Source of the DNA: Octopus sinensis
Lineage: Eukaryota
DNA: 64,000 nucleotides
Direction of reading: 5' to 3'
Assembly: GCF_006345805.1 (NCBI RefSeq)
Contig: NC_043014.1
Location: 5,332,001 to 5,396,000, forward strand
How positions within the stretch are numbered: position 1 is the first letter of the stretch; the number at the start of each line of letters is the position of its first letter. The notes beneath the pieces are model-generated. The model saw nothing but the letters and a program-made list of their open reading frames with translations, did no database searches and was not told the DNA's origin. A program made the translations under genes and the position numbers. Of the stretch, positions 3,899 to 61,314 are shown one piece after another.

Positions 3899-3973
3899 AA
3901 CCCGGTCCCGGATCATTGTATACCCGGTGGGGCAGAACAAGTTGTCCTCCTTATTCAAACCTTGTATATGACG
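3899..3973 (+). CDS. Copy A exon 3 of C4-like-domain membrane protein gene (KPGPGSLYTRWGRTSCPPYSNLVYDG)
   Basis: tttcacag acceptor, G|gttagt donor, 75 nt, phase 1/1. The YTRWGRTxCP motif opens the short-chain collagen C4-like domain. Exons 1-2 presumably lie upstream of the window. Confidence 0.9.
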
Positions 3974-5571
3974 GTTAGTATAAACTATACTTCTGTTCAC
4001 TCTTTCTCTCTTTATCTTTCTCTTCTTCTCTTTTTATTCCTCTCATTTTCTCTTTCCGTTTCTCTCACGCACACGCACGCACATTCAAGCAAATCATGTG
4101 ATATATCACGTTTGTAACGTTACCTATAGACCCTATAGAGACTGCACAAGACTGCTTAATAGTTTGTAGGTATTTGGTCAAATTAGAATTTAAATGTTGT
4201 CTACTATGGACCAGGTGAAAAGGATGTTGTTTAACCACAGAATATAGATATCTCTACGTTAAATTATAGAAAGGGACTAGACTGGAGTCCAGTATAGCGA
4301 ACAAGGACTCCTGGCTGACTTGTATGGATGTAGATATCAAATACCGAGGCTGCTAACTGGTGATCAAATGTACTGGCTACGGCCGGTGGTATTGTACGTG
4401 AGTGACCAGAGCTGGAAAGTGGCCACTTGACTATCATTACCTAGAGTGTCTATTGATTGTTGTTATAAATTAAATTGAACAAGGTCTCTTAGAATTGATG
4501 AATGAATGTATATGGTTAATGAAGTGAACGCAGAATGTAGTGTGGACTGGAAAAACCACACACTGTAACTAATGAACATAGCTAACTAAGCACCGTATGT
4601 ATTATGCAAAATATGGAGGGACCAAGTACCACTGAGAGAACCAAAGTGAGTAAATATTGCACTTCTATTCTTCTCCGCCTTACCGAAATCGTCCTATCCC
4701 TTAAACCTTTCTGTTTTCATGCACCACCTCGCTTCATTAATTGTCTAGTATATCTTTGTAAGGTAACGCCGGTACATCCAATTCAAAGCTACTGCTTCCT
4801 ACATCTTCTCGAACCAATCTGGCATCCTTTGTGAATCTGCTCCCTATAAACCCTACACATATCCTTTATCGGTCGCCCACTCTGCTGTCCATTCATCTTA
4901 AGCACTACGCCATCAATGAGCTTCAAAATTCACCCCACCTCAGTACATGCTTTGCATGAAATAAAATCTGTGTGATCATAATATTATAGTATGTGGTAGG
5001 CCCGTCTCGTGGTAGGCCTGACTCGTCTGAGACAAACCGATGGATATAGCCAGCCACACCCGTATGGTCGGCTAAACAGTATTTCATCCCCTCTTACCCA
5101 CCAGTTCTCTGCATCTCGCCGTCTCTCGTATTGTTCTACTCAAACCACATGCAATTCACATCACCAACAATTTTCCCGTTCAAACGTGAACGACATCTTT
5201 TCCATTTCGGGAAATCACGACCACATGCGTTACAAATCCCTTTCCTTTCTCCTTTTATTGACATCCAGACACAGACATCTACCCCATACAATACACATCA
5301 CAACTACGATTACTTACCCGTACACACACACAAACACATGCACACACACATGAAGAGAAGACAAACGCACAGCTGCAAACTCATGCGCACTCCCATCCAG
5401 CAACACACAGCTTACACTCACATAAACACTAACATATATACACCACAATTCGTTCACACGTGACTAAACATGACTTCTTTTAAGGGTCAAACTGTAATGA
5501 ATGTTTCCGTCATTTCATATGTAATTTTGCTTAATATCTTTGCTTACTTGATTTATTCTCACCAATTCTAG

Positions 5572-6071
5572 GTGTCGTTGGTGGACAACATTTTTCCCAT
5601 ACTGGTGGCGGAAGTAATCTCTTATGTCTACCCAACGATCCCATTTGGGCCAATTATACTACAGAAGGTGAAGATGGGGGTTGGATTTATGGCAGTGAAT
5701 ATCAACTACAGTTATACCCAACTAATAAACTCTTTTCTTTTGCTAACGCTAAATCACTTCATGATCACAACGTTCCGTGTGCTGTCTGTTCGACACGACA
5801 ACCTGCCGTTGTTATGACGTTACCAGCCAGGACAAAGTGTTACGCTGGTTGGACAGCAGAGTATTCGGGATATTTGATGACCGAGCATTATAGTGATAAA
5901 GGCAGATATGAATATGTGTGTGTGGATTATGCACCAGAAGCTGATCCAGCAGGTTACAGAAACGAAGATGGAGCTGTTTTATATTTCGTTCAGGCTGCTT
6001 GTGGTTCATTGCCATGTCCACCGTATGTCCATGGTCAAGAATTAACCTGCGTTGTGTGCAGTAAATATTGA
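5572..6071 (+). CDS. Copy A exon 4 (terminal), C4-like domain GVVGGQHFSHTGGGSNLLCLP...CVVCSKY*
   Basis: ttctag acceptor. Manually read open frame from 5574 is in frame with track ORF 5814..6071. Conserved CLP, CAVC, CVD, CGSLPCPPY and CVVC motifs. Confidence 0.92.
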
Positions 6072-6340
6072 ATAGAAATTAAATTCACTTCCACATGAAA
6101 ATATGCCTGTGAATTACAAGAAACAATATAAAATTTTCAATTTTGTTACCTTATATTTTCTTCAAAGTATGTCTATCGTTACAATAAACTGTCGTACTAG
6201 TTTACAGAAGATATTCAAACAATACAAAAGAGGCGACGTAGAATGCCAGAAATATCCTCAAAATCAAGAAAAATCTAAATCTGTCGAAATGATTCTAGAA
6301 AACATTTTGTAAGATTTCAGTTTATCAAACTTATCGTTGA

Positions 6341-57870: not shown

Positions 57871-58370
57871 GTGTGGCTGGTGGACAATGGTACGACCACG
57901 AAGGTGGCGGAAGTAATTACTTATGTCTACCCAACGATCCCATTTGGGCCAATTATACAACAGAAGTTGAAGCAGGTGGTTACATTTATGGCAGTGAATA
58001 TCAACTATATTTATACCCAACTAATAAACTCTTTTCTTTTGCTAACGCTAAATCAATTAATGATCACAACGTTCCGTGCGCTGTCTGTTTGACACGACAA
58101 CCTGCTGTTGTTATGATGTTACCAGCCAGGACACAGTGTTACGACGGTTGGACAGCTGAGTATTCGGGATATTTGATGACTGGTCATCATCAAAATAGGG
58201 GCAGACATGAATATGTATGTGTGGACTATGCACCAGAAGCTGATCCAGCAGGTTACAGAGACGAAAATGGAGCTGTATTTTATTTCGTTCAGGGTGTTTG
58301 TGGTTCATTGCCATGTCCACCGTATGTCAAAGGTCAAGAATTAACCTGCGTTGTGTGCAGTAAACATTGA
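57871..58370 (+). CDS. Copy E exon 4, C4-like domain (GVAGGQWYDHEGGGSNYLCLP...CSKH*)
   Basis: ttctag acceptor, track ORF 57873..58370. Confidence 0.92.
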
Positions 58371-61170
58371 ATAGAAATTAAATTCGTTTCTATATGAAAA
58401 TTTATGTCGGCGAATCATAAAATAAAATATAATATTACAAAGCAACATATACGTTTCTTGTAATTGTGTTTCGCAATATTTTATCCAACTAATATATGTC
58501 GTTAAATAAATTGCTGCTACAAGTTTTCAGAAAATATTCAAAACGAAACAACAGAGAAGTCATAGAATGTGACAAATAGCTTAACAGAACGATGTAATCC
58601 CCAGGGAATAATTCTAGAATACTTTGTATGAGGTTCAGTTTATCAAATTTAAAAGTTGAAATAAAATTATGATTCGTTTAAATGTGTGTTGTATTCCGTC
58701 TTAAAATGAAAACAATCCCCAAATGAAACACCTCCGTACAAATATATCACCCTTTCATGATCAATCTTCAGAAAACACGATAAAAGCTTATAACTAACAT
58801 CACTAAATCATGATTGTTTAATAAAAAAAATTCTCCCTTACGTATCATTGTGACTACAATCGATGCGATGAAAGCTCTGCAATCCAATCGCGGATATTAC
58901 CAAATAAAGGATATTTGATATCCACTGAAGAAATACCACAAAATGTTGACTACCTAACTACTGGTCTGGTTACTAATACATTGAAGTTTTCACGAAACAC
59001 TTTCGACAAGGGTACAAGTACACGTCTCACGATTAACTATTTTCAACCTACATTCACATATTCCCGCTTTTCTACAAAAATCACACACACACACAGACTC
59101 GCGTAACATTACACACGTAGCCTCTCATCGTTCCCTGAACACTGATGTGCCAAAATAAAATATGAAACCACCAAGAAATATGAGTACACTTCAGGAACAG
59201 CATCAACCGAATCTACAGCAACACCACAAAACATCAAGTTGAACAAATTATCTCCGTCTGTAACATAAAACAATCAAACTCGCAGAAGAGGAACTTGCTT
59301 CGAGATACATGCATACAATAACTGTAACACACATAAACGACTTAGTAAGGAAAGGAACACCACTTATAAAATATACATTAGGTGGAATCAGTGCAACATG
59401 TTGAGTCTTTCACACTCTACCCAGCATGATTGCTCCTTGTATGTGGGAGTTTGTAGAATGGCTGCCAGATAAACGAAGGTATCCGTGGAAAGAGGGATCT
59501 GTGGGTGGCAGCACGTTTTTTGTCCGATTAATTGCGTGCCATAAGAATGCTCGATTGTGAAAAAGCTAGAGAAAAAGAATAATAATTAAGTAATATGAAA
59601 GCACGAAATGCAAATTGACAAATGAATAAATGGAAACATTCAACATGGCGTTTCCAGTGAACAGTATTAGCGCTCAGTGTTAGGCATAAGCAATTTTTAG
59701 GTTCGTTAAAATGTGCTAATGGCATATTTCAAACTCTAAACGCAAATTCTGTGCAAAAAGGTGCCAAAAAAGCATATCAGTCCAGTGCTGCTCCCTATCG
59801 GGTTCCAGTACAGCCGTTATCAAGAGAAAATACCGAAGAGGGGAATATCTGGACAAACTTAAAGCCATAGCTTTAACTTAAGCATAGTCAACAACAACGA
59901 GTAAGTGACGCCATTAGAGCGCCAAGCTGGAGTCTGTCGTGAGTTACCTCCCTTCGGTATTTCTCTTTGATAAATTCTTCGCTCGAGGAGTTGACTTCAA
60001 ACTTGTGCCCCAACAGTAACTGCGGTTGATCGTACGGGCCCGCATTTTCCCGCATATTTGTGTGTGTGTGTGTGTGTGTGTATGTATCCATGTTTGTGTC
60101 TGTGTGTGTGTGTGTGTCAGCGTGTGTGTGTGTCAGTGTGTGTGAGTGTGTGTGTCAGTGTGCGTGTGTGTGTGTCTATGTGTGTGTGTGTGTCAGTGTA
60201 TGTCTGTGTGTGTGAATGTGTGTGTGTGAATGTGTGTGTGTGTGAATGTGTGCGTGTGAATGTGTGTGTGTGTTTCAGTGTGTATGTGTGTTTGAGTATG
60301 TCAGTGTGTGTGTGTGTGTGTGTGTGTGTGTGTGTGTGAGTGTGTGTGTGTGTCAGTTTGTGTGTGTGTATGTGTGTCAGCGTGTGTGTGCGTGTGTGTG
60401 TGTATGTTAGTGTGTGTGTGTGTGTGTGTGTGTGTGTGTGTATGTCATTGTGTGTGTGTGTGTCAGTGTGTGTGTGTATGTCAGTGTGTGAGTCAGTGTG
60501 TATGTGTGTATGTCAGTGTGTGTGTGTGTGTGTGTGTCAGTGTGTATGTGTGTTTGTCAGTGTGTGTGTATCGGTGTGTGTGTGTGTGCGTGTGTTTGTA
60601 TGTGTGTTTCTCAGTGTGTGTGTATGTGTGGGTGTCAGTGTGTGTGTGTTTCTCAGTTTGTGTGTCGGTGTTCGTGTCAGTGTGTGTTTGTGTATCAGTG
60701 TGTGTGTCAGTGTGTGTGTGTCTGTGTGTGTGTGTGTGTCTTTGTGTCTGTGTATTTGTTGATTGAACGAAATACTTCCCACACTGAATATTAAAACAGT
60801 TTCCCAAGAATAACAAATAAAATTAAATAACAACATTAGTAAATAAATATATCATAATATATCCAGAAACAGGAATCATTTCACTTTACACGTGTCTCAC
60901 ATTCATCAAAATATTTTGCTAATTATTGTGTGACAATATCAAACCATCTCTTTCCAATAATTAAACCTGTCAGACAAGTACACACCTCTTTTACAGTTCC
61001 ACCAATCGCATTGGTTCATAAATTTACGATAAGATCTATGCCAGAGCTGGGTTGTTGTGCGCTCAATAAATACGTGGAATTCAGTTACAGGTCTTCAGCT
61101 TAAACCTCGCATCTCGATCTTTTGTTGAAGCCACCCGAAGTATCACGTACGACCGACAACTGTCACCAGA

Positions 61171-61314
61171 ATGGATTTCGCACAACTGTCCAGGAATATT
61201 TCGCAGCGTTATTCCATTTCTTCTCTCATAGCTTTTGGGGTTCTTCTCGTTCTGACGATCGTGATTCTTCATCAAGATTCAAGAATAGGAAAAATGGAAG
61301 AGAAATCGAAAACG
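61171..61314 (+). CDS. Copy F exon 1 (rest of gene beyond window)
   Basis: Same 144-nt exon with gtaagt donor. The following intron matches intron 1 of copies C and D. Confidence 0.88.

Follow-up and report, generated by a model that had tools for sequence, protein, structure and literature searches.

Spongin short-chain collagens, including the 'short-chain collagen C4' of Ephydatia, are reportedly the family that Exposito described in 1991 and Aouacheria in 2006. The NC1 domains of spongins have been characterized as truncated collagen IV variants, with seven shared and three specific cysteines (PMC5395295). We analyzed a 64 kb stretch of the Octopus sinensis genome (CM016876.1:5,332,001-5,396,000; assembly GCA_006345805.1), referred to below as the window, and compared the genes it contains with the closest described systems. 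The window is part of a head-to-tail array of at least 11 units, which extends for 154 kb or more. The units are genes with four exons that belong to the spongin or 'short-chain collagen C4-like' family but lack a collagenous segment. The best-supported statement that we can make about their products is structural: they appear to consist of a type II-like anchored, possibly sheddable NC1-like head with a conserved core and differing loops.

The octopus genes resemble the spongins in their head domain. It is 48% identical to a collagen-bearing protein of Amphimedon (P0090, PF01391), with an E value of 1.7e-40 over 99% of the exon 4 query. Its ten cysteines equal in number the seven shared and three specific ones published for spongins, a match at the level of counts, and the octopus family, like the spongins, falls outside the Pfam C4 model. 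Unlike spongins, the octopus genes and likewise their octopod homologues lack Gly-X-Y repeats. Where spongins have an N-terminal signal peptide, the octopus proteins have a predicted internal hydrophobic anchor, and a stalk that is short and charged takes the place of the triple helix. Moreover, the octopus genes are organized as a large tandem array that evolves in concert.

The collagen IV NC1 domain (PDB 1LI1, 1M3D and 5NAX) is the only fold family matched by a full-length model of an octopus protein. Like NC1, the octopus domain is beta-rich and probably disulfide-bonded and extracellular, and the two share the motif CAVC...C.xGW..GY. However, the octopus domain has about 185 amino acids and 10 cysteines as compared to about 225 amino acids and 12 cysteines, it lacks the HSQ motif, the TM-score stays below 0.5, there is no PF01413 match, and no triple helix is attached. 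A further comparison is one of analogy and not of homology. Ectodysplasin-A (EDA), the TNF ligands and the membrane collagens XIII, XXIII and XXV are type II membrane proteins in which a stalk with a convertase site leads to an oligomeric head at the C-terminus. The octopus proteins resemble them in having a tail, a predicted anchor, a stalk with a basic motif and a C-terminal head, and in that a peptide of the family is present in a secretion. They differ in that the fold of the head is unrelated and that the stalk contains KK or KR only, and not R-X-[KR]-R. Within the family itself, most bivalve members have the same head domain and no collagen either, but these combine a signal-like N-terminus with a heptad-rich coiled coil, whereas the octopod members have the internal anchor and the short charged stalk. 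Amphioxus and sponge members, finally, possess a signal peptide plus a true collagen segment.

The window contains two complete genes that lack collagen sequences

Exons 1 and 4 were located by tblastn with two types of open reading frames (ORFs), exons 2 and 3 were found via annotated octopus homologues, and the junctions were read directly. All four exon types lie on the plus strand, and each junction is a canonical AG/GT with compatible phases. Exon 1 (144 nt, three copies in the window) runs from ATG to ACG followed by gtaagt, comprises 48 codons and ends in phase 0. Exons 2 and 3 measure 52 and 75 nt, respectively, and are present in four copies each. The cysteine-rich exon 4 has 497-500 nt including the stop codon, to which it runs, and is likewise found four times.

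Only two genes, g2 (26637-36837) and g3 (41339-58370), are complete within the window, and their spliced products are intact, with 255 and 256 amino acids. In g2, exon 1 (26637-26780) encodes the initiator Met, a 14-amino acid tail, the hydrophobic segment SISSLIAFGVLLVLTIVIL and the start of the stalk; exon 2 (31083-31134) continues the stalk and contains a KK dibasic motif, and is followed by exon 3 (33821-33895) and exon 4 (36341-36837, 164 codons plus stop). The g3 gene consists of exon 1 (41339-41482), exon 2a (47166-47217), which is identical to exon 2 of g1 and g2, exon 2b (52039-52090), which encodes the variant NRVISKKSCDDKPDDTP, exon 3 (54811-54885) and exon 4 (57871-58370). Using both 52-nt copies of exon 2 would shift the reading frame, and therefore one of them must be skipped; the product has 256 amino acids with either. 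These results agree with a first-pass annotation that was made from the DNA letters alone and that proposed a product of about 255 amino acids from exons 1-4, consisting of tail, hydrophobic anchor, charged stalk and cysteine-rich domain. Its remarks on sequence conservation were accurate as well: the three window copies of exon 1 differ in a single residue (A4S in the copy starting at 26637), and three of the four copies of exon 2 are identical at both the amino acid and the nucleotide level. Finally, it had noted the absence of Gly-X-Y from the spliced proteins. We found the same, and no Gly-X-Y run of at least four triplets is present in any of the six frames of the window, which excludes hidden collagen exons.

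The hydrophobic segment is predicted to act as a signal anchor

An intact unit encodes a charged tail of 14 amino acids, in which no signalling motif is recognisable, a hydrophobic helix of about 19 residues starting at residue 15, a stalk of about 38 amino acids rich in Lys, Asp, Glu and Pro, and a domain of about 185 amino acids. The Kyte-Doolittle mean of residues 15-33 is 2.67, and in the sequence VILHQDSRIG that follows the hydrophobic run small residues at positions -3/-1 are absent. We therefore infer that the segment is an uncleaved signal anchor. The AlphaFold full-length model was that of O. vulgaris P0013, which served as a proxy since it is 85-88% identical to the window proteins and identical to them in exons 1-2. 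In the model (pLDDT 85.8), a single helix spans residues 16-49, the stalk is disordered, and a beta-rich domain predicted with confidence starts at residue 72. Judged from hydropathy and the predicted helix, the topology would be type II, and the disulfide-rich head with its NYT sequon, together with the homologues that have signal peptides, suggests that an N-glycosylated, disulfide-bonded head lies outside the cell.

The same layout of tail, hydrophobic segment, stalk and domain is seen in O. vulgaris, O. bimaculoides, Argonauta and one member encoded on another O. sinensis chromosome, as well as in a bivalve protein (Ruditapes) and in further proteins from metagenomes and read assemblies. 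The position of the dibasic motif in the stalk is conserved in cephalopods and beyond. Octopods have KK or KR at this site, and some of the more distant members have furin-like versions such as RFRR, RHRR and KRKKR. Moreover, a peptide of the family has been detected in the ink proteome of O. vulgaris (PMC10142993). Release of the head by a convertase acting at the stalk KK/KR is plausible.

The head appears to be a remote relative of the collagen IV NC1 domain

The first-pass annotation had related the domain to collagen IV NC1 and had suggested an AlphaFold monomer model and Foldseek as checks. When the full-length model was compared to known structures in this way, 34 collagen IV NC1 chains ranked first (E 2e-6 to 9e-3, probability of at least 0.97 and up to 1.0). 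The next unrelated fold followed at E 0.37, and the NC1 chains were the only significant matches. An hhalign comparison with the NC1 sequence of human COL4A1, which is 100% identical to a PDB chain, aligned the CAVC...C..GW..GY motif with an E value of 1.2e-4 and a probability of 55%. Nine of the 10 cysteines of the domain are invariant in an alignment of 73 sequences, and the HSQ motif was found in none of the window or other copies examined. The number of cysteines and the lack of HSQ are in line with what has been published on spongins. Among the 73 relatives, the Pfam matches were collagen repeats in 7 non-mollusc members and nothing else. On balance, we accept remote homology and regard the head as a probable compact relative of the collagen IV NC1 domain, a relationship with which the spongin literature agrees.

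The proposed resemblance to lectins, in contrast, was not borne out. SCOP places NC1 in the C-type lectin-like fold, and mentions of this placement in the searchable literature are only incidental. No C-type lectin structure is among the Foldseek matches listed for either model, and Lectin_C in Pfam does not match the four exon 4 copies of the window or the 73 relatives.

The strand core of the head is conserved while its loops evolve almost neutrally

Within the array, exons 1-2 are 98-100% identical at the amino acid level, as compared to 81-87% for exon 4. The phrase 'constant anchor, variable head', under which the array had originally been summarized, is thus an apt description of these copies. 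As a design principle, however, it does not hold. Across octopod subfamilies the tail has a mean entropy per site of 0.70 bits and the membrane segment one of 0.49 bits, with 0.64 in the stalk and 0.61 in the head; these values are comparable, and the anchor is therefore not intrinsically more constant than the head. Its constancy within the array is due to the homogenization of a 5' cassette, described below.

Selection was analyzed on nine exon 4 copies of O. sinensis, four of them in the window, and two of O. vulgaris, all of which are intact ORFs. Variation in the head clusters in four or five loops, located near residues 96-101, 120-128, 135-142 and 193-199. The pairwise ratio of non-synonymous to synonymous divergence (dN/dS) of exon 4 ranges from 0.33 to 1.17 with a mean of 0.57; the overall value is 0.53, and the loops do not exceed about 1. 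With strands and loops partitioned in advance from predicted secondary structure, dN/dS is 0.15 in strands, at a synonymous divergence (pS) of about 0.16, versus 0.78 in the non-strand or loop segments, and no loop is robustly above 1. Purifying selection thus acts on the beta-strand core, and the loops evolve almost neutrally. Sliding windows with dN/dS above 1 were rejected as evidence for diversifying selection, since they are confined to stretches of near-zero synonymous divergence. Synonymous divergence, too, peaks in the hypervariable loops. This fits segments that escape homogenization and is no proof of diversifying selection.

Unequal crossing-over and gene conversion shape the array

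The tandem arrangement proposed at the outset was confirmed, with all exon types on the same strand and whole units, including their introns, 83-91% identical to each other. This is repetition far beyond chance and indicates an origin by segmental tandem duplication. A locus sequence that overlaps positions 1-16071 of the window (L001, 100% identity over 16,071 bp) extends upstream, and the 90 kb preceding the window contain six further units in the same orientation plus exons 1-2 of g0. More family members form further clusters on the same chromosome at 3.98, 5.97 and 6.53 Mb, and in O. vulgaris about 20 models with consecutive numbers form a corresponding run.

Around exon 1 the copies are nearly identical. 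The cassette consisting of promoter and exon 1 is 97-100% identical between units, with 97-99% among nine copies as compared to 82-93% for other intron flanks, and the near-identity covers about 300-400 bp of upstream non-coding sequence and about 100-200 bp of intron 1. In g2 the homogenized cassette lies at 26237-26980 on the plus strand, reaching from about -400 to +200 beyond exon 1, and is bounded upstream by a (TG)n tract (25407-26218). The nine copies of exon 1 show five differences, all of them non-synonymous singletons, and no synonymous one. Near-identical non-coding flanks together with exon 1 differences that are all non-synonymous indicate gene conversion and not constraint at the level of the protein. 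One upstream unit (exon 1 at L001 26087-26230) carries the substitution L19P, midway along the hydrophobic anchor helix. The abrupt upstream edge of the cassette was considered as the boundary of a conversion tract. This was rejected because the edge coincides with the (TG)n microsatellite, and the fall in identity is partly an alignment effect. In g2 and g4 the (TG)n tracts, 0.7-0.8 kb long, stop about 420 bp short of exon 1 and mark the upstream limit of the homogenized cassette.

The rest of the unit is a patchwork. The closest relative shifts along its length: g2 is nearest to g1 upstream of exon 3 and nearest to g0 downstream of exon 4. Exon 4 is a recombination mosaic, in which 51% of the informative site pairs fail the four-gamete test and compatibility is greater between adjacent than between distant sites (PHI-like P = 0.001). 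Exon 2, finally, shows 100% identity, compared to 87-93% for the surrounding introns.

Some units have been rearranged. In g3, which is a fusion unit, exon 1 and exon 2a are joined to exon 2b, exon 3 and exon 4. A chimeric exon at the recombination breakpoint (49239-49298, plus strand) consists of intron 2 sequence fused to the last few nucleotides of exon 1 and its GT donor, and was created by unequal recombination. The long-unit structure with two copies of exon 2 recurs twice upstream (L001 3480-23117 and 51770-68478). The g1 unit has no exon 1, and a homologue of the cassette is absent at the expected position, where a (TGTA)n/(GTAT)n microsatellite block (7995-9360) is found instead. The unit is either a 5'-truncated pseudogene or uses another first exon. 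The remaining g1 exons lie on the plus strand: exon 2 (NRFISKKSLDDKPDDTP, 18560-18611), exon 3 (21428-21502) and exon 4 (23229-23728), which is an intact ORF. The region equivalent to its intron 1 contains a Penelope-like retroelement (10861-17721, plus strand) with reverse transcriptase (RT) and GIY-YIG ORFs. A 457-amino acid ORF, the RT ORF (PF00078) and the GIY-YIG endonuclease ORF (PF01541) all seem intact. The element also has partial tandem terminal repeats, in which 11052-11582 equals the C-terminal part of 15387-16217, and the segment 11919-12260 is similar to 16554-16886. It may have been active recently.

At the borders of the window two units are incomplete. For g0 these are exon 3 (3899-3973), which encodes the start of the NC1-like domain (PGPGSLYTRWGRTSCPPYSNLVYD), and exon 4 (5572-6071, 165 codons plus stop), which is identical to the C-terminus of RefSeq model P0005, its exons 1-2 being located just upstream of the window. 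Only exon 1 of g4 (61171-61314) is included, preceded by a (TG)n tract (60059-60753), and the rest of g4 lies beyond the window. Positions 3899 and 61314, given initially as the ends of the array, are exact exon boundaries. The sequence of the window is eukaryotic in character and rich in microsatellites, with long (TG)n, (TGTA)n and (GATA)n tracts at 7995-9360, 25407-26218, 38753-39375, 49547-49979 and 60059-60753. These tracts are candidate hotspots of recombination or gene conversion.

RefSeq models of the array use other N-termini

The chimeric exon at 49239-49298 provides the N-terminus 'SLLDLLCCPETVNIVLPSKT' to the RefSeq models P0004, P0005, P0007 and P0008, and these O. sinensis models therefore lack the anchor. 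In annotations of O. vulgaris and O. bimaculoides the anchor exon is used. P0005 extends over 86 kb and seven units (L001 10001-96006, corresponding to CM016876.1:5,252,066-5,338,071) and joins exons 2b and 3 of one unit to exon 4 of the unit two further downstream. Either multi-mapping reads have led to an artefact of annotation here, or the model reflects splicing between units.

Intron 2 of each unit contains a repeated element, parts of which lie on the minus strand at 363-638, 31754-32173 and 52377-52942 and on the plus strand at 517-588, 19505-19618, 31938-32018, 47986-48093 and 52942-53043. By eye, its antisense ORFs resemble a fragment of a reverse transcriptase (...EKAHDHVPWGML...). 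Its sense strand supplies the N-termini 'MPFRGLQ...' and 'MVTLNLDAKVSTF...' of RefSeq models.

A contig of 1,104 nt from the Logan read assemblies, which stems from a relative, contains an uninterrupted ORF of 283 amino acids with the layout of tail, hydrophobic segment, stalk and domain. It is too short to include introns of kilobase scale and thus resembles a transcript. The contig supports the architecture, not these particular units.

Discussion

Our working reading, which we consider probable, is that the array encodes type II-anchored, possibly sheddable NC1-like heads, whose paralogues form a panel that binds extracellular partners. The hydrophobic segment would hold the protein in the membrane as an uncleaved signal anchor with the head on the extracellular side. 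By extension from NC1 domains, the head would probably oligomerize, and it may be freed by cleavage at the positionally conserved KK/KR of the stalk. The paralogues would then represent heads with the same core and different loop surfaces, directed to different extracellular partners in the matrix or of foreign origin.

A number of results speak against this reading. The RefSeq O. sinensis models of the array skip the anchor exon. The exact spliced g2 and g3 proteins are absent from a collection of 15 billion sequences, the best cluster representatives are just 85-87% identical to the window proteins, and a homology search with g3 recovered no representative above 85% identity and thus no transcript support specific to a unit. 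The TM-scores of the NC1 matches obtained with the full-length model are only 0.30-0.44, and a model of g3 exon 4 by itself (pLDDT 88.4) matches NC1 weakly, with a best E value of 0.37. The match therefore depends on the strand encoded by exon 3 or on details of the model. At E values up to 1, Pfam C4 (PF01413) matches neither the four exon 4 copies of the window nor the 73 relatives, which agrees with a published report that the C-terminal domains of spongins escape PF01413, and a HMMER profile search of PDB sequences found no NC1 chain. Finally, dibasic motifs were observed in 21 of 22 stalks, with 18 expected from composition. An enrichment of dibasic sites in the stalks was rejected, their frequency being no higher than composition predicts.

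The main alternative, to which we assign a rather low probability, is that the genes encode secreted spongin-like matrix proteins without a triple helix, with the hydrophobic segment serving as a cleaved signal peptide and the array providing dosage in a secretory tissue, not diversity. The family descends from extracellular-matrix collagens, its bivalve, amphioxus and sponge members begin with a signal-like segment that precedes a coiled coil or collagen, and one of its peptides occurs in secreted ink. Moreover, homogenization of promoter and exon 1 is typical of dosage arrays, and the loops are near-neutral and not positively selected. However, the hydrophobic run of about 19 residues starts at residue 15 behind a charged tail, the VILHQDSRIG that follows has no small -3/-1 residues, and AlphaFold predicts one long helix from residue 16 to residue 49; heads that are 13-19% apart in amino acids are, in addition, unlike a pure dosage array. 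Were this diversity kept by selection, the products could be lectin-like or pattern-recognition surface receptors with roles in immunity, adhesion or chemosensation, much as the first-pass annotation had inferred. Differences between paralogues that lie mainly in four or five discrete loops, the shuffling of exon 4 segments among copies and the expansion of the array in octopods, with several clusters on one chromosome, would be compatible with this, and so would the peak of synonymous divergence in the hypervariable loops that is expected of segments escaping homogenization. We nevertheless judge such receptors to be unlikely, even more so than the secreted matrix proteins, since no loop or window has a dN/dS robustly above 1, high local ratios reflecting a near-zero pS, since neither HMM searches nor the Foldseek matches listed contain a C-type lectin, and since the 14-amino acid tail has no recognisable signalling motif.

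It is also conceivable, but very improbable, that the array in the window is largely decaying or silent, consisting of recent duplicates that are not yet inactivated, and that the public models are mis-assembled or chimeric transcripts. The g1 unit, which has lost exon 1 and contains a retroelement, and the fusion unit g3 with its duplicated, frame-breaking exon 2 do show some decay. The five exon 1 differences among nine copies, all non-synonymous and including L19P in the helix, the absence of the exact products from public sets and the RefSeq model that covers 86 kb and seven units point in the same direction. Yet the exon 4 ORFs of all nine O. sinensis copies, four of them in the window, and of the two O. 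vulgaris copies are intact, as are all splice sites. The strand codons, with a dN/dS of 0.15 at a pS of about 0.16, indicate sustained purifying selection after duplication, and exon 2 has remained 100% identical between introns of 87-93% identity, which makes decay of the array as a whole unlikely. In terms of function, we thus rank a surface or shed protein with a binding or organizing role as the working hypothesis and a secreted matrix component of a dosage array as its main rival. A lectin or immune receptor is possible but unsupported, and a decaying silent array is unlikely.

The family itself is known, and the loci of the window are already annotated as "short-chain collagen C4-like". 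A search for the NC1-like head recovered 4,616 cluster representatives (50% identity) at E values of at most 1e-3, and no Pfam model covers the domain. Some of the representatives hold 3-9 tandem copies of it, which are probably merged tandem gene models. Gly-X-Y repeats are present in only nine of the 120 closest cluster representatives, which bears out the suspicion that the collagen label is misleading. In the searchable literature, a collagen-less membrane-anchored spongin-like protein of molluscs or cephalopods is not described beyond incidental mentions, and we found no description of concertedly evolving tandem arrays in octopods or of the mis-modelled N-termini in RefSeq O. sinensis.

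These findings have consequences for annotation. The label "short-chain collagen C4-like" is attached to thousands of invertebrate proteins, and the majority of the close relatives of the octopus genes do not belong to the collagens. As a consequence of the label, they are assigned to collagen or the extracellular matrix in automated studies of matrisomes and transcriptomes. The annotation of the array itself can be corrected as well, since the N-termini of the RefSeq O. sinensis models are chimeric or derived from repeats and the anchor exon is left out. The octopus proteins provide a concrete case of an NC1-type head without a triple helix, which bears on the evolution of the collagen IV and spongin modules. 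The family is, in addition, a candidate for recognition at the cell surface or by secreted proteins in cephalopods, animals in which little is known about the innate recognition repertoire. A bolder proposal, which we put forward as speculative and improbable, is that in octopods the spongin/NC1 head, a matrix module of ancient origin, has given rise to a clustered set of recognition proteins that are anchored in the membrane and can be shed. Shuffling of segments among the members of the array would diversify the loop surfaces, while the homogenized promoter-anchor cassette would keep expression and targeting uniform. If this were true, the array would represent a new class of variable receptors of invertebrates, at the surface or humoral, or of TNF/EDA-like ligands built on an NC1 fold.

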